Source: Piromyces finnis finn (Eukaryota; Fungi; Neocallimastigomycota). From it: a DNA stretch of 64,000 nt. The stretch lies in NCBI GenBank assembly GCA_002104945.1, contig MCFH01000002.1, positions 1,426,001 to 1,490,000 on the forward strand. Reading direction: 5' to 3'. The number at the start of each line of letters is the position of its first letter. Position 1 is the stretch's first letter. The translations under genes and the position numbers were made by a program. This document shows, one piece after another, positions 6,421-22,385 of the stretch. The notes below the pieces were generated by a model that did not search any database, was not told where the DNA came from, and worked only from the letters and a program-made list of their open reading frames with translations.

Positions 6421-7570
6421 TAATTTATAATGTCATTTATATCAGCTTAAATAGCTAAAAAGTATAAATATAAATACAAATGTAAAAAAAAAAAAAAAAG
6501 GTTGTTGTTTTTTTATGCTAAAAAAAAATAACAAATTATAATATATATAATAAATAAAAAATAAAATTTGTATTATATCTTTAGATAAAAAAAAAAAAAA
6601 AAGCAAGTGTAAAATTTTTGTATATTTAAATTTTTTTATTTTATTTAAAGATGAATAGAGTGTTTATGAAATTAAATGAGAATTGATTAATGTTGATAGT
6701 CTATTAGTTTATTTTCCAAAAAGAAGTCTTTTAAATTTTTGGAGAATAAAATTAAATGCTCTTTATTTTTATTCTTGAAGTAATAAAAAGTATGAAAAAA
6801 TAATTGCCAATTTTTAAAAACTATTCTAATTGAAGTAAAAATTATATACTAAAAATTATAAAATTAAGCATATCATGATAAATTATTAATGCCTAATAAT
6901 AATATTTTACATCATTGTTACAATTGTTAGTAATACTAATAATAATCAATAAACTTATGTTTGACTATTCACTTCATCAATAATAATTTAATAATAGTAA
7001 TAATAAAAAAAAAAAACTCATAGTAAATTTAAGAGACAAGAAGTAACAATAAATAAAATTTTACATTATTTATTAGAACATTTTGTATTAGGCATTTTTA
7101 TTATTTTTATTGACAGTAGTAACATTTAATAAATAGTTCTTTTATTAATTAAAAGGATAAAAAATTAATAATAATGCTACATAAATATTTAGTTTTTGTT
7201 AATCCCAAGAAAAAAACATATTTACTTACAGAATAAAATGTTTGTAATCTTTTAATAATAATATTTTTTTTTTTATTAGAATTATAAATTAAATTTTAAA
7301 GAGGAATATTTGGACTGGACAATTGAAATGTTTAATGTTTAATAATAATATCATTAAAATTTGGAAATAACCATTATTTATAAAAAACAGAAAATAAAAA
7401 GGAAGTTTTATCATTTTTTACTACTTTGATCATTTTTGAACTTTTATATTGAAATTAATATTAATAATATTATTGCTTGAATATAAAAATAATTTTTAAA
7501 CTTTCAATATATCTAAAGTCAAAATCAAAAAACACCTTAATATAATATATTTAAAATTAAATTCTACCAC

Positions 7571-7713
7571 AATATATAGTATAAAAAAAAATATCAAAAC
7601 GAAAAAATATATATTATATTAAATACAATGTATAATATAATTATTATTTAATTTCTTTTATTTCTGTGTATTTTAATAATTATATTTAATTATTTATTGA
7701 TATATATTAATAT

Positions 7714-7747
<34 letters not shown>

Positions 7748-10596
7748 CTATTATCTTATTATTAAAATAATTAAATTTTTATTTTTTAATTTTATTAATT
7801 TTTATTACTAACAAACCATTATTGGTTATTTTTGATGTAATATTCATAAGATCAGCATCATCTGGAATCTTTATCTTTGTGGTTTCTTTAATATTTTCTT
7901 GTATATGTTTTTTCAAGTGAGCTTTGCTTTTAGTCTCTCTTTCCTTATTATTTTTTTTCTTTTTATCTTTTTCATTAGGATCCTTTCCAATAATAGATAA
8001 AATATGCTTTTTATTATATTTAATTTTAATTTGATCTTTTTCTAATCCAGATAAATAAACATAAATGTAATAGTTATTTTCATTTTGCTTAATGACCGGT
8101 AAGGATCTACTCATCTTTTTCATTGAATGATTTTTCATTGAATGATTTTTCATTGAATGATTTTTCATTGAATGATGCCAATCAAATGGAACAAATGAAT
8201 TTAAGAAATGACAGTGTTTATTACGATATAATGAACGGCCACGATGACAATGATGATGATAAAGATGATGATGACAACGATGTTTAAATAAATTTATAGA
8301 ATACCAACCTTTGTGACATTTATTCTTCCATTTATTTTTACATTTATTTTTACATTTATTTTTATATTTATTTATAATATGTCCTTCAAATGGATTTTTA
8401 AATGGTCCTAATGAATGACAACGACGATGTCCATGATGTCCATAATTACCAATATGTCCTTCGAATGGATTTTTAAATGGACCTAATGAATGGCAATGAC
8501 GATGTCCATGATGTCCATGATGTTCATGATGACTTTCAAATGGACCTAATGAATGGCAACGACGATGTCCATGATGTCCATGGTGTCCATGATGACTTTC
8601 AAATGGACCTAATGAATGGCAACGACGATGTCCGTGATGTCCATAATTACCAATATGTCCTTCAAATGGATTTTTAAATGATCCTAAAGAGTGATAACAA
8701 TGACCATAGTGATGATATGCATGTCCAATATGATCTTGATAAATATTATTTTTATGAATATTATTTTTATGAATATTATTTTTATGAATGTTATTATGAT
8801 TGATACATTCAAAATTGTTCATTGATTGTAAAAATTGACGAAGACAATGACAATTAAAACGTGAATTTTCAAGTAGATATTTTTCACCAAAAGAACAATG
8901 ACTAGGATGGATCAAATGATGGATCGAACGACAGAAAGGTGGTGATGATTTTGAGTAAAGAGAAAAATTATGGTGACAGTGTTGATGATGCTTTTGTTGA
9001 TCAGTAGAATCAAAAGAATGATGAACTGAAATAGGTTTAAAAGCACAAAAACGAATATTATGACGACGACGATAACTGTAAAAATGACGATCATGAAAAT
9101 GTTTATGAAGATGTCCATGAAGATGTCCATGAAGATGTCCATGAAGATGTCCATGAAGATGTCCATGAAAATGACCATGAAGATGTCCATGAAAATGACC
9201 ATGAAAATGTCCATGAAAATGTCCATGAAGATGACCGTGAGAATGGAAATGATGATTCATTTTCATGAAATAATACCATTGACCATCACCCAATCCCAAT
9301 AAGTATTTTTTCATTAAAGAATGACAATGATGATAATTTCTAAATGAATTAAATGGTCTAAATGGTTTCATAAAATGGTGTGGATGTCTTATTGGTACCA
9401 TGTGCTTCATTGGTGGACATGAATGACCATGACCAAAAGGTCTCGTTGGTTTTAGTTCATGCCCGAAGCTAGAATTGAAGTGTTGATGTTTTTTTGGACG
9501 AAAAGAATCATTAAATTTATGAGGACTACAAATATCATGAAAATGACCTTTAAATTCATGATGACCATGAAATCCATGAGAATGATTTTTAAATAAATGA
9601 CCAAATTCATGATGACCATGGCGACCATAACGACCATGATGGTTATAATAAGCATGAGGACCATAATAAGCATGAGGACTATTAAATCCATGAGGATCAT
9701 GAGAATCATTAGGATCATGAGGACTATTAAATCCATGAGGACCATGAGGACCATGAGGATCATGAGAACTATTAAATCCATTTGGACCATGAGGATCATG
9801 AGAATCATGAGAACTATTAAATCCATTTGGACCATGAGGATCATGAGAATCATGAGAACTATTAAATCCATTTGGACCATGAAAATCTGGCATTAAAGCA
9901 TAGCCAAAATTATTACCACAGTGTTCATTTTTATGATAAAAGTAGCCATAATGATGACCATAATGACTATGATAACCATGATGATCATGACAACCACGAA
10001 GATTATTATCATGATTAAATGAGACAGTTCTTTGATTAGGATGACCAAAGTCATGATTTAAAGCACCATTAAAACAATTGCCTCCAAAAAATGAAGGTAA
10101 TGGTTTACCATAGTTAAAAAGCATTCTTTTTTATTTTTTATTTTTTTTAATTATTAATAATACTAATACTAATAATAATACTAAAAATTTTATTTTATTT
10201 TTTTTAATTGTAAATTGCTATATTATATATATAATAAACTATATATTTTAATTAAATATTATATTTTAATAATTAATATTTAATTGATGAAAAAAAAAAA
10301 AAAAAAAAAGAAAAAGAAAAACTTTGACTTTTTATATTTTCAAGTAAACTTTACATTTATATTATATGTTCCATTCTGATATAAGGTATTGAATTACAAA
10401 TCCAAGGAATAAAGTAAATTTTATTTTAATTTATTGTTAATATAATAAAAACAAATGATTTTTTAACGAATTAGTAATAAAATATATATTAAAATATATA
10501 TAATTGAATTTATTACTAATTCAAAAAATTGTTTAATATATTTATTAAAGTTTTTGATCTTTTTTTTCTTTTTTTTTTTCAGAGTTTCTATAGAAT
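7571..10596 (-). repeat. Left arm of large inverted repeat (gene palindrome)
   Basis: Reverse complement of 11302-15850, including ~470 bp upstream and ~200 bp downstream non-coding sequence. Identity breaks at ...GAGTTTCTATAGAAT (10596) and at ~7571 (AATATATAGTATAAAA). Confidence 0.95.
7779..10124 (-). CDS. His/Gly/Cys-rich repeat protein with C-terminal Hsp20/alpha-crystallin-like domain (781 aa, short paralog)
   Basis: Intronless ORF. The C-terminus (YYIYVYLSGLEKDQIKIKYNKKHILSIIGK...KIKIPDDADLMNITSKITNNGLLVIKINK) matches the alpha-crystallin-domain pattern (LPG..KEDIKI..LTISG...LPddvD...I.ak..NGvL.I.iPK). The N-terminal ~670 aa consist of several His-rich repeat blocks. Confidence 0.8.
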   Translation of the reverse strand: MLFNYGKPLPSFFGGNCFNGALNHDFGHPNQRTVSFNHDNNLRGCHDHHGYHSHYGHHYGYFYHKNEHCGNNFGYALMPDFHGPNGFNSSHDSHDPHGPNGFNSSHDSHDPHGPNGFNSSHDPHGPHGPHGFNSPHDPNDSHDPHGFNSPHAYYGPHAYYNHHGRYGRHGHHEFGHLFKNHSHGFHGHHEFKGHFHDICSPHKFNDSFRPKKHQHFNSSFGHELKPTRPFGHGHSCPPMKHMVPIRHPHHFMKPFRPFNSFRNYHHCHSLMKKYLLGLGDGQWYYFMKMNHHFHSHGHLHGHFHGHFHGHFHGHLHGHFHGHLHGHLHGHLHGHLHGHLHKHFHDRHFYSYRRRHNIRFCAFKPISVHHSFDSTDQQKHHQHCHHNFSLYSKSSPPFCRSIHHLIHPSHCSFGEKYLLENSRFNCHCLRQFLQSMNNFECINHNNIHKNNIHKNNIHKNNIYQDHIGHAYHHYGHCYHSLGSFKNPFEGHIGNYGHHGHRRCHSLGPFESHHGHHGHHGHRRCHSLGPFESHHEHHGHHGHRHCHSLGPFKNPFEGHIGNYGHHGHRRCHSLGPFKNPFEGHIINKYKNKCKNKCKNKWKNKCHKGWYSINLFKHRCHHHLYHHHCHRGRSLYRNKHCHFLNSFVPFDWHHSMKNHSMKNHSMKNHSMKKMSRSLPVIKQNENNYYIYVYLSGLEKDQIKIKYNKKHILSIIGKDPNEKDKKKKNNKERETKSKAHLKKHIQENIKETTKIKIPDDADLMNITSKITNNGLLVIKINKIKK

Positions 10597-11770
10597 GAAT
10601 ATAAATATAATTGATATAAATATATTTTATGGAATAATTATTTACTATATGTATTTCTCCTCACAAAACTGATATTAACTTATATATAAAATATTCATTT
10701 TTATTGTATTATTATATTATTAAATACTAACAAAGAATTAATTAATTACAAGACTAATTCTGATATTAGTATTTTAATATCATGTAATTTTTATCTTAAA
10801 AAATTTCAGCAGGAATAGTTTTAATCATTAAAGATATTGAATTAGCAAAATGTATAAAATTTCTAAAACATCAATTCATACCATAGTTTTATTAGAATGA
10901 AAATCTAATATCTATTTAGTTAATATTATTTGTTAATTATTAATAATATAATAAATATAATAATATTAAAAATATAATTGAAAAAAATAAATATTAAAAT
11001 TATTAATTACAATAAATTTATAAAAAATTATTATTTATAATATTATAATAGTTTATAATTAGTATATTAATAGTGCAACTCTTAAAAGTTTAATATTCCT
11101 ATCTAAACAATAAGAATTAATTACTAATGAAATAATTATCTGTAATGTGGCAAGAATATTAGCAATATTAAAAATTAAACAAATAATATAATAGTTTAAA
11201 ATATTGATAATTATAACATTTATTTTAAGTTTATATTATTAATATTCTTTATTTTTTAATTATTTCAATTTATATTAGAAGCTAATCCATATATACTTGA
11301 TATTCTATAGAAACTCCGTAAAAAAAAAAAAAAAAGATCAAAAACTTTAATAAATATATTAAACAATTTTTTGAATTAGTAATAAATTCAATTATATATA
11401 TTTTAATATATATTTTATTACTAATTCGTTAAAAAATCATTTGTTTTTATTATATTAACAATAAATTAAAATAAAATTTACTTTATTCCTTGGATTTGTA
11501 ATTCAATACCTTATATCAGAATGGAACATATAATATAAATGTAAAGTTTACTTGAAAATATAAAAAGTCAAAGTTTTTCTTTTTCTTTTTTTTTTTTTTT
11601 TTTTTCATCAATTAAATATTAATTATTAAAATATAATATTTAATTAAAATATATAGTTTATTATATATATAATATAGCAATTTACAATTAAAAAAAATAA
11701 AATAAAATTTTTAGTATTATTATTAGTATTAGTATTATTAATAATTAAAAAAAATAAAAAATAAAAAAGA

Positions 11771-14700
11771 ATGCTTTTTAACTATGGTAAACCATTACCT
11801 TCATTTTTTGGAGGCAATTGTTTTAATGGTGCTTTAAATCATGACTTTGGTCATCCTAATCAAAGAACTGTCTCATTTAATCATGATAATAATCTTCGTG
11901 GTTGTCATGATCATCATGGTTATCATAGTCATTATGGTCATCATTATGGCTACTTTTATCATAAAAATGAACACTGTGGTAATAATTTTGGCTATGCTTT
12001 AATGCCAGATTTTCATGGTCCAAATGGATTTAATAGTTCTCATGATTCTCATGATCCTCATGGTCCAAATGGATTTAATAGTTCTCATGATCCTCATGGT
12101 CCTCATGGTCCTCATGGATTTAATAGTCCTCATGATCCTAATGATTCTCATGATCCTCATGGATTTAATAGTCCTCATGCTTATTATGGTCCTCATGCTT
12201 ATTATAACCATCATGGTCGTTATGGTCGCCATGGTCATCATGAATTTGGTCATTTATTTAAAAATCATTCTCATGGATTTCATGGTCATCATGAATTTAA
12301 AGGTCATTTTCATGATATTTGTAGTCCTCATAAATTTAATGATTCTTTTCGTCCAAAAAAACATCAACACTTCAATTCTAGCTTCGGGCATGAACTAAAA
12401 CCAACGAGACCTTTTGGTCATGGTCATTCATGTCCACCAATGAAGCACATGGTACCAATAAGACATCCACACCATTTTATGAAACCATTTAGACCATTTA
12501 ATTCATTTAGAAATTATCATCATTGTCATTCTTTAATGAAAAAATACTTATTGGGATTGGGTGATGGTCAATGGTATTATTTCATGAAAATGAATCATCA
12601 TTTCCATTCTCACGGTCATCTTCATGGACATTTTCATGGACATTTTCATGGTCATTTTCATGGACATTTTCATGGACATTTTCATGGTCATTTTCATGGA
12701 CATCTTCATGGACATCTTCATGGACATCTTCATGGACATCTTCATGGACATCTTCATAAACATTTTCATGATCGTCATTTTTACAGTTATCGTCGTCGTC
12801 ATAATATTCGTTTTTGTGCTTTTAAACCTATTTCAGTTCATCATTCTTTTGATTCTACTGATCAACAAAAGCATCATCAACACTGTCACCATAATTTTTC
12901 TCTTTACTCAAAATCATCACCACCTTTCTGTCGTTCGATCCATCATTTGATCCATCCTAGTCATTGTCGTTCTTTTGGTGAAAAATATCTACTTGAAAAT
13001 TCACGTTTTAATTGTCTTCGTCAATTTTTACAATCAATGAACAATTTTGAATGTATCAATCATAATAACATTCATAAAAATAATATTCATAAAACTAATA
13101 TTCATAAAACTAATATTCATAAAAATAATATTCATAAAAATAATATTCATAAAAATAATATTCATAAAAATAATATTCATAAAAATAATATTCATAAAAA
13201 TAATATTTATCAAGATCATATTGGACATGCATATCATCACTATGGTCATTGTTATCACTCTTTAGGATCATTTAAAAATCCATTTGAAGGACATATTGGT
13301 AATTATGGACATCACGGACATCGTCGTTGCCATTCATTAGGTCCATTTGAAAGTCATCATGGACATCATGGACATCACGGACATCGTCGTTGCCATTCAT
13401 TAGGTCCATTTGAAAGTCATCATGGACATCATGGACATCATGGACATCGTCGTTGCCATTCATTAGGTCCATTTGAAAGTCATCATGGACATCATGGACA
13501 TCATGGACATCGTTGTTGCCATTCATTAGGTCCATTTAAAAATCCATTTGAAGGACATATTGGTAATTATGGACATTACGGACATCGTCGTTGTCATTCA
13601 TTAGGTCCATTTAAAAATCCATTTGAAGGACATATTGGTAATTATGGACATTACGGACATCGTCGTTGCCATTCATTAGGTCCATTTGAAAGTCATCATG
13701 GACATCATGGACATCATGGACATCGTCGTTGCCATTCATTAGGTCCATTTAAAAATCCATTTGAAGGACATATTGGTAATTATGGACATTACGGACATCG
13801 TCGTTGCCATTCATTAGGTCCATTTGAAAGTCATCATGAACATCATGGACATCACGGACATCGTCATTGCCATTCATTAGGTCCATTTAAAAATCCATTC
13901 GAAGGACATATTGGTAATTATGGACATCATGGACATCGTCGTTGCCATTCATTAGGTCCATTTAAAAATCCATTTGAAGGACATATTGGTAATTATGGAC
14001 ATTACGGACATCGTCGTTGTCATTCATTAGGTCCATTTAAAAATCCATTTGAAGGACATATTGGTAATTATGGACATTACGGACATCGTCGTTGCCATTC
14101 ATTAGGTCCATTTGAAAGTCATCATGGACATCATGGACATCATGGACATCGTCGTTGCCATTCATTAGGTCCATTTAAAAATCCATTTGAAGGACATATT
14201 GGTAATTATGGACATTACGGACATCGTCGTTGTCATTCATTAGGTCCATTTAAAAATCCATTTGAAGGACATATTGGTAATTATGGACATTACGGACATC
14301 GTCGTTGCCATTCATTAGGTCCATTTGAAAGTCATCATGGACATCATGGACATCATGGACATCGTCGTTGCCATTCATTAGGTCCATTTAAAAATCCATT
14401 TGAAGGACATATTGGTAATTATGGACATTACGGACATCGTCGTTGTCATTCATTAGGTCCATTTAAAAATCCATTTGAAGGACATATTGGTAATTATGGA
14501 CATTACGGACATCGTCGTTGTCATTCATTAGGTCCATTTAAAAATCCATTTGAAGGACATATTGGTAATTATGGACATTACGGACATCGTCGTTGCCATT
14601 CATTAGGTCCATTTAAAAATCCATTTGAAGGACATATTGGTAATTATGGACATTACGGACATCGTCGTTGCCATTCATTAGGTCCATTTAAAAATCCATT

Positions 14701-15646
14701 TGAAGGACATATTGGTAATTATGGACATTACGGACATCGTCGTTGCCATTCATTAGGTCCATTTGAAAGTCATCATGGACATCATGGACATCATGGACAT
14801 CGTCGTTGCCATTCATTAGGTCCATTTAAAAATCCATTTGAAGGACATATTGGTAATTATGGACATTACGGACATCGTCGTTGCCATTCATTAGGTCCAT
14901 TTGAAAGTCATCATGAACATCATGGACATCATGGACATCGTCATTGCCATTCATTAGGTCCATTTAAAAATCCATTCGAAGGACATATTGGTAATTATGG
15001 ACATCATGGACATCGTCGTTGTCATTCATTAGGACCATTTAAAAATCCATTTGAAGGACATATTATAAATAAATATAAAAATAAATGTAAAAATAAATGT
15101 AAAAATAAATGGAAGAATAAATGTCACAAAGGTTGGTATTCTATAAATTTATTTAAACATCGTTGTCATCATCATCTTTATCATCATCATTGTCATCGTG
15201 GCCGTTCATTATATCGTAATAAACACTGTCATTTCTTAAATTCATTTGTTCCATTTGATTGGCATCATTCAATGAAAAATCATTCAATGAAAAATCATTC
15301 AATGAAAAAGATGAGTAGATCCTTACCGGTCATTAAGCAAAATGAAAATAACTATTACATTTATGTTTATTTATCTGGATTAGAAAAAGATCAAATTAAA
15401 ATTAAATATAATAAAAAGCATATTTTATCTATTATTGGAAAGGATCCTAATGAAAAAGATAAAAAGAAAAAAAATAATAAGGAAAGAGAGACTAAAAGCA
15501 AAGCTCACTTGAAAAAACATATACAAGAAAATATTAAAGAAACCACAAAGATAAAGATTCCAGATGATGCTGATCTTATGAATATTACATCAAAAATGAC
15601 CAATAATGGTTTGTTAGTAATAAAAATTAATAAAATTAAAAAATAA
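11771..15646 (+). CDS. His/Gly/Cys-rich repeat protein with C-terminal Hsp20/alpha-crystallin-like domain (1291 aa, long paralog)
   Basis: Intronless ORF, near-identical to 7779-10124 outside repeat-number differences; same ACD-like C-terminus. Confidence 0.8.
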   Translation: MLFNYGKPLPSFFGGNCFNGALNHDFGHPNQRTVSFNHDNNLRGCHDHHGYHSHYGHHYGYFYHKNEHCGNNFGYALMPDFHGPNGFNSSHDSHDPHGPNGFNSSHDPHGPHGPHGFNSPHDPNDSHDPHGFNSPHAYYGPHAYYNHHGRYGRHGHHEFGHLFKNHSHGFHGHHEFKGHFHDICSPHKFNDSFRPKKHQHFNSSFGHELKPTRPFGHGHSCPPMKHMVPIRHPHHFMKPFRPFNSFRNYHHCHSLMKKYLLGLGDGQWYYFMKMNHHFHSHGHLHGHFHGHFHGHFHGHFHGHFHGHFHGHLHGHLHGHLHGHLHGHLHKHFHDRHFYSYRRRHNIRFCAFKPISVHHSFDSTDQQKHHQHCHHNFSLYSKSSPPFCRSIHHLIHPSHCRSFGEKYLLENSRFNCLRQFLQSMNNFECINHNNIHKNNIHKTNIHKTNIHKNNIHKNNIHKNNIHKNNIHKNNIHKNNIYQDHIGHAYHHYGHCYHSLGSFKNPFEGHIGNYGHHGHRRCHSLGPFESHHGHHGHHGHRRCHSLGPFESHHGHHGHHGHRRCHSLGPFESHHGHHGHHGHRCCHSLGPFKNPFEGHIGNYGHYGHRRCHSLGPFKNPFEGHIGNYGHYGHRRCHSLGPFESHHGHHGHHGHRRCHSLGPFKNPFEGHIGNYGHYGHRRCHSLGPFESHHEHHGHHGHRHCHSLGPFKNPFEGHIGNYGHHGHRRCHSLGPFKNPFEGHIGNYGHYGHRRCHSLGPFKNPFEGHIGNYGHYGHRRCHSLGPFESHHGHHGHHGHRRCHSLGPFKNPFEGHIGNYGHYGHRRCHSLGPFKNPFEGHIGNYGHYGHRRCHSLGPFESHHGHHGHHGHRRCHSLGPFKNPFEGHIGNYGHYGHRRCHSLGPFKNPFEGHIGNYGHYGHRRCHSLGPFKNPFEGHIGNYGHYGHRRCHSLGPFKNPFEGHIGNYGHYGHRRCHSLGPFKNPFEGHIGNYGHYGHRRCHSLGPFESHHGHHGHHGHRRCHSLGPFKNPFEGHIGNYGHYGHRRCHSLGPFESHHEHHGHHGHRHCHSLGPFKNPFEGHIGNYGHHGHRRCHSLGPFKNPFEGHIINKYKNKCKNKCKNKWKNKCHKGWYSINLFKHRCHHHLYHHHCHRGRSLYRNKHCHFLNSFVPFDWHHSMKNHSMKNHSMKKMSRSLPVIKQNENNYYIYVYLSGLEKDQIKIKYNKKHILSIIGKDPNEKDKKKKNNKERETKSKAHLKKHIQENIKETTKIKIPDDADLMNITSKMTNNGLLVIKINKIKK
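13255..15065 (+). repeat. Coding tandem array of 75-nt (HSLGPFKNPFEGHIGNYGHYGHRRC) and 63-nt (HSLGPFESHHGHHGHHGHRRC) units
   Basis: 25 complete units (16 A-type, 9 B-type) plus a partial unit, counted from the translation. The left paralog has 4 complete units plus a partial unit. Confidence 0.95.
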
Positions 15647-15889
15647 AAATTTAATTATTTTAATAATAAGATAATAGTTTTTTTTTTTAAAAAAAAAAAA
15701 AAAAAATTCATATTAATATATATCAATAAATAATTAAATATAATTATTAAAATACACAGAAATAAAAGAAATTAAATAATAATTATATTATACATTGTAT
15801 TTAATATAATATATATTTTTTCGTTTTGATAATTTTTTATACTATATATTTTTTATTGATATTTTATAATTTTTTTTTTATGGGATTAA

Positions 15890-17170
15890 GATAATTTACA
15901 ATATTTTTATCTTAAATTCGGAGTTCATAAAGCTGTATCGTTTATATCTTTATACTTTATCTCAAAAGATTTGAATATTCCTCCATTGTCAGCCAAATGT
16001 GCGTTAGCTCAGGTTAGATGTTTTAACAAATGGAAAAACTCAAATTGTATTATCTCATACCTTGTCAATTACATTCCTAAATTTAGAAAATATACGTGGT
16101 GCAAATCAAGTAGGACACTTGATAAAAAACTAAAGAAGCATGGAGATGTTAAAGCAGTTAAAAACTTTTATTGGAAAGATCTCAAAGGGAATTCAATCAA
16201 AGCGCAATATTATGATGATAATAAATTTATTGAAACTAAAGATTTTATTAAATTATGTTATGAGTACCCAGAGTTTGCCTATGGCTTCTACTGGCTATTG
16301 AAAGCAAGAAGCGGATACAAGTTGGATGCTAGAGTTGCCAAAGCTGCTAAAATTGTTGATCCAGTTTGTCCTAACTACTGTCCATGTTGCAAGTGTGGTT
16401 TTCAAAGTATTAAACATTGGTTATTAGATTGTCCAACATTTAGAGATATCCGTATTAAACATTATGATTCCATAGTCCAGCTATTAAATTTTTTCAGTTA
16501 ACGTAATTCCAACAGTCCTATCAATAATAATGAAAATATTAATATCAGTAGAGATAGCAATAACATTAATAGTAATAGTAACAATAGTAATAATAACAAT
16601 AACAATAGTAATAGTAACAATAGTAATAGTAACAATAGTAATAATAACAATAGTAGTAATAGAAATAATAATATTAGTAATGATAGCAATAGTGATGATA
16701 ATAATTCTAATTTAGATAGTAATTTAGTTAATGATAGTAATAGTTCTAATAATCCGGTGAATATTAATGTGTATGATTATTCTAGTGTGTGCAGTAAAAT
16801 ATTTAAATTCCTTCTTGGGGGAAGAAGTTTTAACAATATCAATTACAATTCAAGGGAATGGAAAGTACTTTACAAGTGTCAGATTCAATCGGGCACTTAC
16901 GAAGGAACACCATTCTTGACGGTAACCGCGGAACTTCTAACCAAAATCATGCCTTTTGCTATTGGCCAGCAATGGTTAATGTTCAAAAGGTTTGAAGCAA
17001 CATCCAAGAGCGTCAATGCTGAAGAAACAGTATGACAGGCCAGGAGGGCCAGCGCAACCAATGGAGATCATAATTTTGTCCCATGATAAAATTTTGATTT
17101 TTGGCTCGGTGTCCCATTGGAAGTCAAATACAATTATTATACTTTAGTATGATAGTGGCTTTCTTACTTT
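15890..17170 (+). mobile_element. 5'-truncated non-LTR retrotransposon (LINE-like) remnant: C-terminal ORF2 region with CCHC zinc knuckle plus 3' UTR
   Basis: CPCCKCGFQSIKHWLLDCPTFRDIR resembles the C-x2-C...H-x4-C motif at the end of LINE ORF2. ORFs 15971-16501 and 16757-17035 are in the same frame, separated by a single TAA (16499-16501) and an Asn/Ser-rich stretch. The GC-richer 3' segment 17036-17125 contains inverted repeats. No RT core is present. Confidence 0.6.
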
Positions 17171-18104: not shown

Positions 18105-21100
18105 TTAATTTTTCTTATTAAAACTTGAACTATATCTTTCAGCAAGACGATCTATACTTAAACCAAGAACACAAACATCTTTGTATAATGAATTAAAAGT
18201 TTTAGAATGACGTTTAAACGAATTTGTTGATTGAATTGGAAGTGTTGAAGTTGTAATTTGTTGTATAGGTACTGAGTATGATGAAGTTGTTGTGGAAATT
18301 GAGATGGACAAGTTAGATGCTTTTGATTTCAATGAATAATATTCATCATTCATTTCTGATGGTTTTAATTCTGGGGTAATTGGATTTGAGAAAATGGACT
18401 CATTATAACCATCATTGACTAAAACTTTATTATTAATACATTTTTCATATTCTTTCACCTTTTTTTTTGATATTTGTGGGTCATTATCATATTGTAAATA
18501 AGAATCTTTTTCTAAAACATTATTTGTAGTATAAGTAATATTTTTATGCAAATTTTGTTGCATCTTGTTTTTGGTCTCATAATTCGATTTTACTATGCTG
18601 ATAATCTGATCTTTCACAAATTGCTCTTGCGGTTTCAATTTATATAATAAACTTACTGTACGTTTACTTCTGGGTAAGATATGTTTATTTGATGCTGTTT
18701 TATCAAATTTTTTTATAAATACACTTGAATTTTTCCTATTAATATCATTTGCAATAGGTAAAATTTCACTATTGGATCTTTTAGTTTCAATAACAGGATG
18801 AAGACTAGACAATGAACAATCTGGTAATTGTAATGAATACTGCATTGATTTATTTGGAGATATAAAAGAAGAAGATAAGTTAGGTGACTTAAGTTTTCTT
18901 GATCCTCTTATATTACTAGTTATTTTTCTACTGAAATCATTTGAATGATGATGATGATGTCTATCCTGGTCTTTAGGAGAAGCTAATTGATCACCAAAAT
19001 AAATTGGTACAGTAAGTGTGGCTGATGAAGTGTACACCATAGATCGTTCATTTCCTTTCTTACTATGAGTTAAAGTAAGCATCCATTTTTTGATTTGATC
19101 GCTGAACTTAGTAGTAAGATTCTTATTTTTCCATTTATTCTCATTACTACAAGCAATACAGGGTATCAATGGAGAAAGAACAGAATCTTTACAAGTATGA
19201 ATTTGAAAATTAGTAATATTAGTACTATCATCAGGTTCTAATAACTCTATAGGTAAATAATTATAAGTTGATGTCTTTTCAGAACACTTTGTATCAATTA
19301 TTTGAATATTACTTTTTTGTGGTTGAGGTATAATTTGATTTTGTGGTATATTGTTGATTGAATTCATGGTATCATTGGCTGCAGTAGAACCGGCAGTTGA
19401 ATGATTAGTTTTTGGCGTTAACATGGAAACATCAAAATATCTCTCATCAATACTGATATCATAATCTTTCATTGCATAAGCTTTAATCATACTACTATTT
19501 TCTGGAACATCAATCAACTTTGGTTGGGTTTGATGAAAGGTAGGAAGGGATGACATTTTACCATTTAAATTAAGTAAAGATTTATAGGTTTTGGTTTTAT
19601 TTGATTGATTCATTGATGTAATATCATTTTCTACATTACTAATAACTGTATCCTTGAATTCGAGTGAGGTAAAAGTTGTATCAATCATAATACTTTCTTC
19701 GCTTTTTTCTACTATTTTTGTTTGCTTATTATTTATTGAATAACTGACATTTTTATTTTTATTATCTTTAATTTTCTTGACTTTAGAAGACTGTTGTTCC
19801 ATGGACTTTTCATTGTTGGAATATGATAGCCCGAGATAATAATTATCATAAAATGAATCATTTTGCTCGCAATTTAGATTTTCACTATTACCTTTATTTG
19901 TTTTATCGAAAGATGTGTTAGAATTATCACAATTTGAAAATGTATCGTTATGTGGATTACCATCGTTTTTTGTAATATTACCGGAACTTTCAATGTTTTC
20001 AAATTTCTTTTGCCACTGTTTTCGCCTTTGAATATTTTTACGTTTACGAGCTTTATCCAATAAAGGTTTAATATCTTCACTACAACTTTTCTTTTTTTCT
20101 GAATTACTATTTCTCGAAAGATTATTTTGTGTATTCAATTGACCATTTAATTTATCTTTTATGCTAGTTATTGATTCATTCTTTATATCAATTATTGATT
20201 CTTCTTTTTTATTAATCGTTGGTTCATCTTGTATATCAGCCTTTGATAATTTCCTTATACAATGTAAAGAAGAATTTCTAACGAAAGGAAGACGATAACT
20301 ACTAATTTCTTTTTGTTCATTATTGTGATCTGTGGTAATATTATATCTTGCTTTCATTGTTACATCACTACTCCAATGTGAGTCTGTTGTTATTTTAGAT
20401 TGTTCATCTTCCAAGTAAGATGGTTTATTTAAATGATATTTAATAAAAGTAAAAGAATTAGAAATTAATGACTCATTTGGAGCTTCATCCTTAATATTAG
20501 ATTGATTTTCAGAAGATAAATTACTTTTCGAATCAAGAATATTTCTATTAGTGGTATCTAGGAATAGTGAATTAGAATCATTTAGATTATTAAAATCAAT
20601 TGTCGTCATTATATTACTACTAATTTGATTAGGTATATCATTATGTGAATTAATATTAGTTGTAATATTCGTTGCAGGTGTAATATTGGAATTAGCGTTA
20701 ATACTTTCAGAATTTATTGATGTTGAAATAATTTGAGATTGTAATGAGGGAAATTTTATTTCATGGACTGTCATTTTTGATAATTTTTTTTCATCTTTTT
20801 GATTTAATTTTTTAGAATCTTGCTTAAAGACGGCTTTTAAGGATTTATTTTTTATATTTTGTAAGAATAATTTTGGATTTGATTTTTTCTTGGTAAGAGA
20901 ATCAAGATCATAGAAACAATTGATTTCTTTTGATTCTCCATCCTTATAATTATTTGAACAATTACCATTATTACTATCTTGAACAGATTTTGAGCTTTGA
21001 TCATCAAGAGAATTTGATGACCGTTTTTTCTGTACACTATTTACTTCTTCGATTAAGGAATCTGACACAATTTGATGTCTAGCAATCAATTTTTGATTTA

Positions 21101-22385
21101 TGAGAGTAGTGTTTTTTAAGGAGGGTAAAGAAGGAGAATGAATAATCATATGGTTAGTTTGTGTTATTTTTGTACTGCCAAAAGTTTGGTGAATAATTTC
21201 AGGCGAAGTTGCAATACCTGCAGTCATAGTTGTTGTTTCTACGATTTTCCATGGCCCCTTTACACCTTGAACGATGGAGGTATCCTGAATAATAGGATGA
21301 CAACTCCTCGTTATTATACCCATGCGTTTTTTATTAATTTTAACTAAATTGAGATCCTTACTACCTCTTTTTTTATTTTTTTTTATTTTTTTTTCTTTTA
21401 TATATGTTTCAGATGATTCTTGGAAAGAATTTTGACTATTTTGACTATCACTTCTTTTTCTCTTTTCACGAGAACTTTCAGTAATAATTGTAGTATTACT
21501 CTTTTCAATATTCTCTGATTTTACTTCATCTACCAATGAAGAATTATTTAGTTCAATCATATCTGATGAAAAGGTATTTGATAAACTTGTATCTTTTCCT
21601 AATGTTGCTTGAGTCGAACTTGGCGTATGAATAACATTTAATGGTTTAATTTCATCTTCATTAATGATTTCAACACTATTTTGTCCTTCAATATTTAATA
21701 AATTAGAACTTTCTTTAGAAAAAGATGTATTGATAGAAATGATTTCTTTTTCATTTTCTTCGCTAATACTATCTGTTGTTTCAAAACCTTCATTTTCAAG
21801 GATTTCACCTATTTGACTTATTGTCGATATATGTTTAGGTTTATATGTAATTAAACTACTATCTACTTCTATATTAGAGATTTGCGTTGGTGTTTGAAGT
21901 TGATCTGGTACTTGAGATATACAAGCTGTTTTTTCTTCTGATGCTTCGGTTTTAGGTACTTCAATATTGGAATTTGAATGAATTTTTTTCAAATTTTGTG
22001 GTTCAAGAGAATTTGGGCGACTAAATACTTGAATCTTTCTCTTTCTACTATTAATTTGTTCTTCAAATGGGTTTATTGATGATTGAATGAATTCAATGGT
22101 TTTTGCATCATAATGCGGATTTTGTACCATATTATCTTGATTATTTAAATTTGAAGGTGCACGGCTAATTGCCATTTGTTTTTGATATGAAACAAAGTAA
22201 TATCCTTGTTCATGTATTGGCTTATCATCTTCGTTTTTTTTATTTTTTTTATTTTGTTTTTTCTTATTTGATATTTTAAAAATAAAAGGAAAATGAAAAC
22301 CATTTTTTGATTTTCCTTCTATTATCGTTGATTCCTTTGATTTATTTTTTGCTTTATATCTCCTTTTAATATTAAATATACCCAT
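18105..22385 (-). CDS. Hypothetical low-complexity Ser/Asn/Lys-rich protein (1426 aa), single exon
   Basis: 4.3-kb uninterrupted ORF in AT-rich DNA; no domain recognised. Confidence 0.75.
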   Translation of the reverse strand: MGIFNIKRRYKAKNKSKESTIIEGKSKNGFHFPFIFKISNKKKQNKKNKKNEDDKPIHEQGYYFVSYQKQMAISRAPSNLNNQDNMVQNPHYDAKTIEFIQSSINPFEEQINSRKRKIQVFSRPNSLEPQNLKKIHSNSNIEVPKTEASEEKTACISQVPDQLQTPTQISNIEVDSSLITYKPKHISTISQIGEILENEGFETTDSISEENEKEIISINTSFSKESSNLLNIEGQNSVEIINEDEIKPLNVIHTPSSTQATLGKDTSLSNTFSSDMIELNNSSLVDEVKSENIEKSNTTIITESSREKRKRSDSQNSQNSFQESSETYIKEKKIKKNKKRGSKDLNLVKINKKRMGIITRSCHPIIQDTSIVQGVKGPWKIVETTTMTAGIATSPEIIHQTFGSTKITQTNHMIIHSPSLPSLKNTTLINQKLIARHQIVSDSLIEEVNSVQKKRSSNSLDDQSSKSVQDSNNGNCSNNYKDGESKEINCFYDLDSLTKKKSNPKLFLQNIKNKSLKAVFKQDSKKLNQKDEKKLSKMTVHEIKFPSLQSQIISTSINSESINANSNITPATNITTNINSHNDIPNQISSNIMTTIDFNNLNDSNSLFLDTTNRNILDSKSNLSSENQSNIKDEAPNESLISNSFTFIKYHLNKPSYLEDEQSKITTDSHWSSDVTMKARYNITTDHNNEQKEISSYRLPFVRNSSLHCIRKLSKADIQDEPTINKKEESIIDIKNESITSIKDKLNGQLNTQNNLSRNSNSEKKKSCSEDIKPLLDKARKRKNIQRRKQWQKKFENIESSGNITKNDGNPHNDTFSNCDNSNTSFDKTNKGNSENLNCEQNDSFYDNYYLGLSYSNNEKSMEQQSSKVKKIKDNKNKNVSYSINNKQTKIVEKSEESIMIDTTFTSLEFKDTVISNVENDITSMNQSNKTKTYKSLLNLNGKMSSLPTFHQTQPKLIDVPENSSMIKAYAMKDYDISIDERYFDVSMLTPKTNHSTAGSTAANDTMNSINNIPQNQIIPQPQKSNIQIIDTKCSEKTSTYNYLPIELLEPDDSTNITNFQIHTCKDSVLSPLIPCIACSNENKWKNKNLTTKFSDQIKKWMLTLTHSKKGNERSMVYTSSATLTVPIYFGDQLASPKDQDRHHHHHSNDFSRKITSNIRGSRKLKSPNLSSSFISPNKSMQYSLQLPDCSLSSLHPVIETKRSNSEILPIANDINRKNSSVFIKKFDKTASNKHILPRSKRTVSLLYKLKPQEQFVKDQIISIVKSNYETKNKMQQNLHKNITYTTNNVLEKDSYLQYDNDPQISKKKVKEYEKCINNKVLVNDGYNESIFSNPITPELKPSEMNDEYYSLKSKASNLSISISTTTSSYSVPIQQITTSTLPIQSTNSFKRHSKTFNSLYKDVCVLGLSIDRLAERYSSSFNKKN

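Follow-up and report, generated by a model that had tools for sequence, protein, structure and literature searches.

Histidine-rich repeat proteins with a C-terminal alpha-crystallin domain encoded by a palindromic gene pair in Piromyces finnis

What defines small heat shock proteins (sHSPs) is their small size and a short disordered N-terminal arm, in which client binding, sequestration and, in the case of HSPB5, zinc buffering reside. HSPB5 (alphaB-crystallin) binds zinc via its disordered N-terminal region, and zinc cross-bridges the HSPB5 oligomers (PMC12803927). The sequestrase activity of sHSPs needs aromatic-rich N-terminal extensions (PMC9458469). A partly similar layout is found in the CHORD-CS proteins (RAR1-like proteins, Chp1 and melusin), which combine Cys/His-rich zinc modules with an HSP20-like beta-sandwich (PMC6197667). 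Here we describe two genes of the anaerobic gut fungus Piromyces finnis (strain finn) in which the arm has grown to 670-1180 residues. They lie in a stretch of 64,000 nt (assembly GCA_002104945.1, contig MCFH01000002.1, positions 1,426,001 to 1,490,000 of the forward strand), called the window below and used for all positions given without a contig name. Gene 1 (7779-10124, minus strand) encodes a protein of 781 aa and 92.2 kDa, and its paralogue gene 2 (11771-15646, plus strand) one of 1291 aa and 150.9 kDa; in both, a long series of His-rich repeats is followed by a C-terminal alpha-crystallin domain (ACD). With a probability of roughly 0.45, we propose that the pair would act as a cytosolic, disordered, multivalent scaffold that responds to metal and pH and is built on an sHSP module, serving as a conditional metal store and as a stress-switchable scaffold or sequestrase. 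This functional reading is drawn from chemistry and precedent, and the metal binding, phase separation and zoospore or sporangium role suggested by the first-pass annotation would likewise follow from chemistry.

Gene 1 and gene 2, both intact and without introns, are near-identical paralogues arranged head to head in a palindrome (7556-15867, with arms at about 7556-10575 and 11320-15867); they belong to a lineage-restricted family. A first-pass annotation, made from the DNA letters without database searches, had reported open reading frames (ORFs) of 781 and 1291 aa here, and we recovered both at exactly the same coordinates. The two proteins differ in 2 of 759 aligned residues and by a few small indels; the remaining difference is confined to the copy number of five repeat blocks. 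At the DNA level, the palindrome copies are 99.3-100% identical in the coding parts and 89% identical in the 3' flanks, and upstream of each ATG, 476 nt form mirror copies with 99.2% identity. This near-identity of coding, upstream and flanking DNA points to a recent duplication or ongoing gene conversion. The P. finnis genome (56.46 Mb, 232 contigs) holds only these two copies.

That these are real genes follows from their length, their base composition and their start. No stop-free run in 200 shuffled versions of gene 2 exceeded 180 codons. The GC content is 29-34% over both genes and 31-33% in their coding DNA, as against 12-18% in the non-coding DNA of the window and 12% in the divergent upstream region that both genes have in common (10125-11770, with a unique centre at about 10576-11319). 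Upstream of the gene 2 ATG, the frame is closed by a TAA at a distance of three codons, and the start Met of the window proteins is matched by the start of an orthologue, described below, that is itself preceded by stops.

The last 105 or so residues of both proteins are a genuine ACD, albeit an atypical one (7785-8093, minus strand, residues 678-780 of the gene 1 product; 15332-15640, plus strand, residues 1188-1290 of the gene 2 product). The first-pass annotation had called this end of the proteins ACD-like and had proposed to check it against PF00011 and by structure prediction, and both checks bear it out. Against a curated cut-off of 20.8 bits, the Pfam HSP20 model (PF00011) gives the whole proteins 37.6 bits, and the score rises to 44.5 bits when it is run on their last 133 aa alone; in a six-frame scan of the genome, the same profile gave 40.5 and 41.7 bits for the two domains. 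A sequence search of the PDB returned bacterial and plant sHSP core domains, with 3gla as the best match (E = 1.6e-3). We also built an AlphaFold2 model of residues 668-772 from a 12-sequence alignment; the last nine residues, which make up most of strand beta9, lie outside this model. It shows the alpha-crystallin beta-sandwich, with a predicted local distance difference test score (pLDDT) of 79-86 in the strands and below 50 in a Lys-rich loop (model residues 52-76). When this model was compared with the PDB by Foldseek, the best 50 matches were all sHSP ACDs (query-normalised template modelling score 0.57-0.60, best E = 7e-4).

The domain shares with canonical sHSPs its position at the C-terminus, the beta-sandwich and the motifs NNYY(I/V) in beta3, (I/L)P(D/E)(D/N)A before beta8 and NG(L/V)L in beta9. 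It differs from them in several other respects. With 23.6% Lys and a net charge of about +17, it is unusually basic; its Lys-rich loops resemble nuclear localisation signals, and the loop between beta5 and beta7 is predicted to be disordered in the AlphaFold2 model. The conserved Arg of beta7 (R120 of alphaB-crystallin, in the pattern F-x-R-x-F-x-(L/I)-P) has given way to Thr, next to a Lys, in the window proteins and to Lys in their orthologues. The chain ends five residues after beta9 (...LLVIKINKIKK; ...KINKIK(A/T)EN in the orthologues), and no C-terminal I-x-I/V motif is found in either, whereas most ordinary sHSPs of this genome end in IQIQ, IEIQ or IPIQ. Canonical sHSPs range from 12 to 43 kDa, as the first-pass annotation had noted; the computed masses of 92 and 151 kDa lie far outside this range. 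Compared with that of canonical sHSPs, the N-terminal region is longer by a factor of 15-30, and 22% of it is His. Because the HSP20 profile and fold are present while the size, the I-x-I tail and the beta7 Arg are not those of canonical sHSPs, we regard the window proteins as ACD proteins of sHSP descent that stand apart from them.

The N-terminal region comprises about 670 residues in the gene 1 product and about 1180 in that of gene 2. Besides its 22% His, it contains 10-14% Gly, 13% aromatic residues and 3.6-3.8% Cys. The whole proteins are 19.6% and 20.9% His and 3.1% and 3.5% Cys (gene 1 and gene 2, respectively), amounting to 153-270 His and 24-45 Cys per chain, and their pI is 9.6-9.7. 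Nearly all Cys residues of the N-terminal region adjoin a His (21 of 24 in gene 1, 41 of 45 in gene 2), and CxxC motifs are absent from it. The computed charge of this region is +40 (gene 1) and +84 (gene 2) at pH 7.5 and climbs to +165 and +307, respectively, at pH 5.5. Both proteins are soluble and very basic: as the first reading had stated for the signal peptide, there is no hydrophobic N-terminus, signal peptide or transmembrane stretch (highest Kyte-Doolittle mean over 19 residues, 0.58). A Pfam scan of the N-terminal region found no domain; a match to Extensin_1 with E = 0.0093 and 16 bits, where the cut-off is 105, was rejected as a low-complexity artefact. A single-sequence AlphaFold model of 772 aa presents the entire N-terminal region as coil with a pLDDT of 30-40; the ACD was poor in that run as well, which makes the coil weak evidence.

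Motif counts in both proteins confirmed every one of the His-rich repeat blocks listed in the first-pass annotation. A GFNS(S/P)HD(P/S)H block with a 45-nt period (9653-9882, minus strand, in gene 1; 12013-12197, plus strand, in gene 2) contains GFNS[SP]H five and four times, respectively. It is followed by a HGH(F/L) block of 11 units with a 12-nt period in gene 1 (9092-9233, minus strand) and 12 units in gene 2 (12605-12770, plus strand). The HKNNI block has a 15-nt period, with three H[KN][NT]NI units in gene 1 (8727-8795, minus strand) and 9 to about 10 in gene 2 (13064-13222, plus strand). The largest difference in copy number, 4 versus 25, concerns units of 21 or 25 aa that end in RRCHSLGPF: gene 1 (8376-8670, minus strand) has 4 CHSLG[PS]F units and gene 2 (13262-15064, plus strand, periods of 75 and 63 nt) has 25, each with one additional CYHSLGSF variant. 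The KNKC block contains four KNK[CW] units in both genes (8316-8373, minus strand; 15067-15124, plus strand), and in gene 1 it is followed by a Cys/His cluster, HRCHHHLYHHHCH. A HSMKN block consists of four HSMK[NK] units in gene 1 (8116-8176, minus strand), where it lies directly before the ACD, and of three in gene 2 (15264-15309, plus strand).

A search for homologues, which the first-pass annotation had suggested, led to collinear orthologues with the same ACD on four metagenome contigs. When 1.84 billion representatives were searched exhaustively with HMMER, one true relative emerged, a 106-aa ACD piece (P0001) with 56% identity to the query. It is found on two JGI contigs (L022 and L023), and a second such piece (P0045) on an ENA contig (L024). 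In all three contigs, the sense frame is open from the first base and encodes His/Arg-rich repeats, RRCHSLGPFE-type units, a GEQYLLENARYNYLRQFL island and (H/P)xGFG repeats before it reaches the ACD. The fourth contig (L028) came from a DNA scan of JGI metagenomes for the CHSLGPFE motif, which hit four stretches with L028 as the sole family member. Its protein starts with MLFNYGYPLPPFYRGNCFNGSL, preceded by stops and a leader of 13% GC; the window proteins start with MLFNYGKPLPSFFGGNCFNGAL, and the pattern common to both is MLFNYG.PLP. From the 12-13% GC of their non-coding flanks, we infer that the four contigs come from related anaerobic fungi.

The islands and the domain order are kept in collinear arrangement across the four contigs. 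Window proteins and orthologues have in common the first 22 or so residues, a C.PMK.M.PI.HP island, a PPFC...YLLEN.R.N.LRQFL island and the repeat around HSL (the RRCHSLGPF type). This is the sole repeat type present in both; the GFNSSHD, HKNNI, KNKC and HSMKN blocks occur in P. finnis only. Arg, His and Cys abound in the orthologues. Comparing L022 with L024, we obtained ratios of nonsynonymous to synonymous substitutions (omega) of 0.19 for the ACD and 0.50 for the part of the N-terminal region that can be aligned. In a phylogenetic tree, the ACDs of the family form one clade (support 93/96) that has no resolved position among the ordinary sHSPs. The lineage-restricted family is real and conserved. 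L022 and L023 carry one orthologue from one metagenome sample in two versions that are 63 aa, or three repeat units, apart. This resembles the difference in copy number between the two P. finnis genes, and paired or variable copies may be a property of the family.

Over 28 distinct contexts from three organisms, the consensus of the common repeat is [RH]-R-[CS]-H-S-L-G-P-[FY]-E. H-S-L is invariant, Arg stands at position -3 in 23 of the 28, and the position just ahead of HSL holds Cys (20 contexts), Ser (5), Arg (2) or Tyr (1). Such a pattern could also be read as a phosphorylation site. R-R-x-H-S-L-G-P would then be a repeated target of a basophilic kinase, with Arg at -3/-4 and a hydrophobic residue at +1, close to the mode-1 motif of 14-3-3 proteins, and its 5-26 copies would tune the assembly of a multi-site phospho-regulated scaffold in the manner of the RxxS phosphorylation in the N-terminal region of mammalian HSPB1. 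The invariance of the Ser with its preceding His and following Leu, the frequent Arg and the exchange of Cys at -2 for Ser agree with this idea. However, it is purely a reading of the motif, and Pro is at +3 here, not at +2 as in the 14-3-3 consensus; we regard it as improbable.

Apart from the ACD pieces, protein searches for the family came back blank. A word-indexed search with the 781-aa protein gave none of 8000 candidates at E <= 1e-3, and the same search with the antisense ORF annotated on L024 gave no match. The remaining HMMER matches considered (P0002-P0010) were rejected as relatives, since they consist of periodic GN(V/L)xG-type or other repeats that match the HGH(F/L) block alone. 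A peptide-pattern scan of JGI metagenomes had no match, and a feature search of the ESM Atlas no usable one. On the metagenome contigs, public gene calling has put an ACD piece of 106-111 aa and antisense ORFs rich in Asp, His and Asn in the place of the long sense ORF (called ORFs at L022:2-859, L024:32-604 and L024:611-853, all minus strand). This choice of the gene callers may explain the blank protein searches; with the sense ORF uncalled, the family may be effectively absent from protein databases.

Word counts in sequencing runs provide an indirect view of expression. In a DNA run, 0.88 of the sampled words of 7500-11800 were present. Four runs that we guess to be RNA (three studies, same organism) contained 0.45-0.53 of them, close to the share of gene 1 in this stretch (0.545). 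These fractions fit transcripts that hold the gene without the spacer.

A further question is whether the pair has a function at all. It could be a runaway coding microsatellite on a decaying sHSP gene, or the palindrome could be an artefact of assembly. In favour of this, the two copies have unequal repeat numbers, as have two contigs from a single metagenome sample, and public gene callers do not call the sense ORF. Yet the frames are intact over 781 and 1291 codons amid non-coding DNA of 12% GC, omega stays below 1 in the orthologues, which retain the start as well as the islands, the core of the repeat and the ACD, and the words in the DNA run extend across gene 1 and the spacer. We therefore consider this explanation very improbable and already disfavoured.

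If the pair is functional, a role in the flagellated zoospore has to be considered. The proteins might be structural, as an insoluble component of accessory fibres or of the kinetosome similar to ODF1/HSPB10, or they might serve packaging and, as polycations similar to protamines, compact nucleic acid or aggregates of ribosomes. An ACD next to Cys-containing repeats is also found in ODF1, whose fibres are zinc-rich (PMC8471410). The strongly basic pI, the charge of the ACD, its loops resembling nuclear localisation signals and the Arg/His/Cys-rich composition of the orthologues would suit such a role. Against it, the repeats are N-terminal and His-rich here, as opposed to the C-terminal Cys-Gly-Pro repeats of ODF1, disulfide hardening would hardly be expected in a strict anaerobe, and the RNA-like runs that hold the gene come from bulk cultures. 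A zoospore protein of this kind seems unlikely.

Our preferred proposal, the metal- and pH-responsive scaffold, would work as follows. The N-terminal region would be intrinsically disordered and would serve as a multivalent ligand field for protons and divalent transition metals (Zn, Ni, Co, Cu), in which dozens to hundreds of imidazoles per chain, together with the Cys-His dyads, could bind and buffer metal. Bridging by metal, or deprotonation of His above a pH of about 6.5, would cause the aromatic and Gly-rich chains to self-associate, and the conserved R-R-[CS]-H-S-L-G-P-[FY]-E core would be the working unit of the array. Through an sHSP-type contact surface, the ACD would engage either a second ACD as partner or non-native clients. 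Such a mechanism would be an extreme version of the zinc handling by the His-containing N-terminal region of HSPB5.

Several points weigh against this proposal. The Cys of the repeat core is exchanged for Ser or Arg in 7 of the 28 contexts, while H-S-L never varies, so the conserved feature may not be a Cys-His ligand pair. With neither an I-x-I tail nor the canonical beta7 Arg in the ACD, the proteins may not assemble in the manner of sHSPs. No strict three-unit heat-shock element (nGAAnnTTCnnGAAn) was found in the divergent promoter (10125-11770), although the control for this search is weak, with 2 of 20 canonical sHSP loci carrying the element in the flanks that were fetched. Finally, the disorder of the N-terminal region is deduced from composition and from the single-sequence model, in which the ACD was also poor.

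Some of this evidence could also be explained without metal, by a chaperone or sequestrase that forms condensates in response to pH and resembles yeast Hsp42. Acidification of the cytosol by fermentation acids would protonate the roughly 150-270 His of each chain, the aromatic and Gly-rich assemblies would dissolve or re-form, and the ACD would keep non-native proteins there. The large computed swing in charge around pH 6-7 and the 13% aromatic and 10-14% Gly residues of the N-terminal region point in this direction, as do the requirement for aromatic N-terminal extensions in sHSP sequestrases (PMC9458469) and the expanded and diversified HSP20 repertoire of anaerobic fungi (PMC10512342). On the other hand, sHSPs of C. 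elegans without an I-x-I tail are sequestrase-negative (PMC9458469), and the His-rich family has no such tail. The promoter lacks a detectable heat-shock element, and the Cys-His dyads and the cluster HRCHHHLYHHHCH would be superfluous for a pure pH switch. We regard a metal-independent switch as rather unlikely.

The genome of P. finnis contains about 20 ordinary sHSP genes in tandem arrays, in agreement with the published expansion of HSP20 proteins in anaerobic fungi (PMC10512342). Tandem and inverted arrays of near-identical genes are located at C163:509000-561000 and C189:1155000-1189000, with at least 8 copies of a 214-aa type and at least 8 copies of a 226-238-aa type that has a Thr/Asn-rich insertion in the beta5-beta7 loop. 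The nearest paralogue of the pair's ACD is a 186-aa sHSP on the same contig, at a distance of 320 kb and with 36% identity. We also noticed a third oversized ACD protein of 843 aa (C183:270091-272622, corresponding to L021:5091-7622). Its ACD is close to the N-terminus (residues 75-155, approximately) and is followed by a Ser/Asn/Lys-rich tail of about 690 aa with tandem KSVDNKSRNQKDINSNNENKSS units, the reverse of the layout of the His-rich pair. Because of this N-terminal ACD and the composition of the tail, it was rejected as a paralogue of the pair.

Some further features were observed in and around the palindrome. Mirror-image homopolymer tracts of about 32 nt (10290-10321 and 11574-11605) are located 165-200 nt upstream of each ATG; within the 99%-identical promoter arms, they form T-runs on the sense strand of each gene. 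The orthologue on L028 has a run of 18 A about 70 nt upstream of its ATG. Just after gene 2, an ORF of 176 aa with a TTG start (15971-16501, plus strand) displays the Cys/His pattern CPNYCPCCKCG...HWLLDCP; it has no Pfam match and could be the remnant of a zinc-binding region of a mobile element. Directly downstream of the palindrome, an ORF of 1426 aa (18105-22385, minus strand) encodes a Ser/Asn/Lys-rich and probably disordered protein with an HHHHH run near its C-terminal third, again without a match in Pfam.

A broader and more tentative idea, which we hold to be rather less than likely, is that the pair represents a class of giant ACD proteins in anaerobic gut fungi that had gone unrecognised. 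An sHSP module would there anchor a His/Cys array of more than 1000 residues, whose role would be to store metal at high capacity in a pH-gated manner and to scaffold condensates. The class might be an adaptation to the sulfide-rich, metal-poor and acidifying rumen, or a zoospore-specific material, and antisense gene calls would have hidden it from protein databases. With an arm of 670-1180 residues that is rich in His and Cys and conserved across organisms, the family would be an extreme test case for the N-terminal control of sHSP function. It would also be a candidate for metal homeostasis in strict anaerobes of sulfide-rich guts, a little-known field, and as a natural multivalent His array it may be of use in metal capture or in pH-responsive materials. 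A practical warning is that gene calling, by reporting an ACD piece and spurious antisense ORFs, may systematically miss families of this type.

The first-pass annotation did not recognise the architecture as a described family, and we came to the same result: we found no description of such a layout in anaerobic fungi in the open-access literature, the stress-gene catalogue of these organisms does not mention a His-rich ACD layout (PMC10512342), and the N-terminal region holds no Pfam domain. Known systems resemble the pair in part. Very high His contents in short tandem repeats are typical of Hpn and the His/Cys tail of HspA (GroES) in Helicobacter pylori, which store metal, of the histidine-rich beak proteins of squid, which form pH-triggered coacervates, and of Plasmodium HRP2. 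HspA, moreover, joins a chaperone module to its His/Cys extension. All of these are unrelated to the window proteins in sequence, lack an ACD and are mostly far smaller or secreted. In the CHORD-CS proteins, CHORD is a folded 60-residue domain with two zinc ions, combined with a CS/p23 sandwich; the window proteins carry HSP20 and not CS, and Pfam reported neither CHORD (PF04968) nor CS (PF04969) in them at E values up to 10.

The repeats of ODF1 are C-terminal and made of Cys-Gly-Pro. The analogy with ODF1/HSPB10 that the first-pass annotation had drawn is valid for the layout of an ACD with Cys-containing repeats, and ODF1, a protein of the outer dense fibres of mammalian sperm, is associated with zinc and has a structural role in a flagellated cell (PMC8471410). 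It does not extend to homology: the window repeats are N-terminal and His-rich without CGP units, there is no similarity outside the ACD, and the exhaustive HMMER search returned no ODF1-like relatives. In Hsp42, the N-terminal extension has a few hundred residues, is prion-like (Q/N/Y-type) and is accompanied by a C-terminal extension. Hsp42 and the other sHSP sequestrases of fungi or animals share with the window proteins a long, disordered, aromatic-rich N-terminal extension, which drives the deposition of misfolded proteins in those systems (PMC9458469); in the window proteins, it is His-rich instead of prion-like. HSPB5 is alike in the mechanism that we propose, namely reversible zinc binding by a disordered, His-containing N-terminal region and oligomers bridged by zinc (PMC12803927). 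Of its 175 residues, 9 (5%) are His and none is Cys, whereas the window proteins, for which metal binding is a proposal, offer 153-270 His and 24-45 Cys in every chain.

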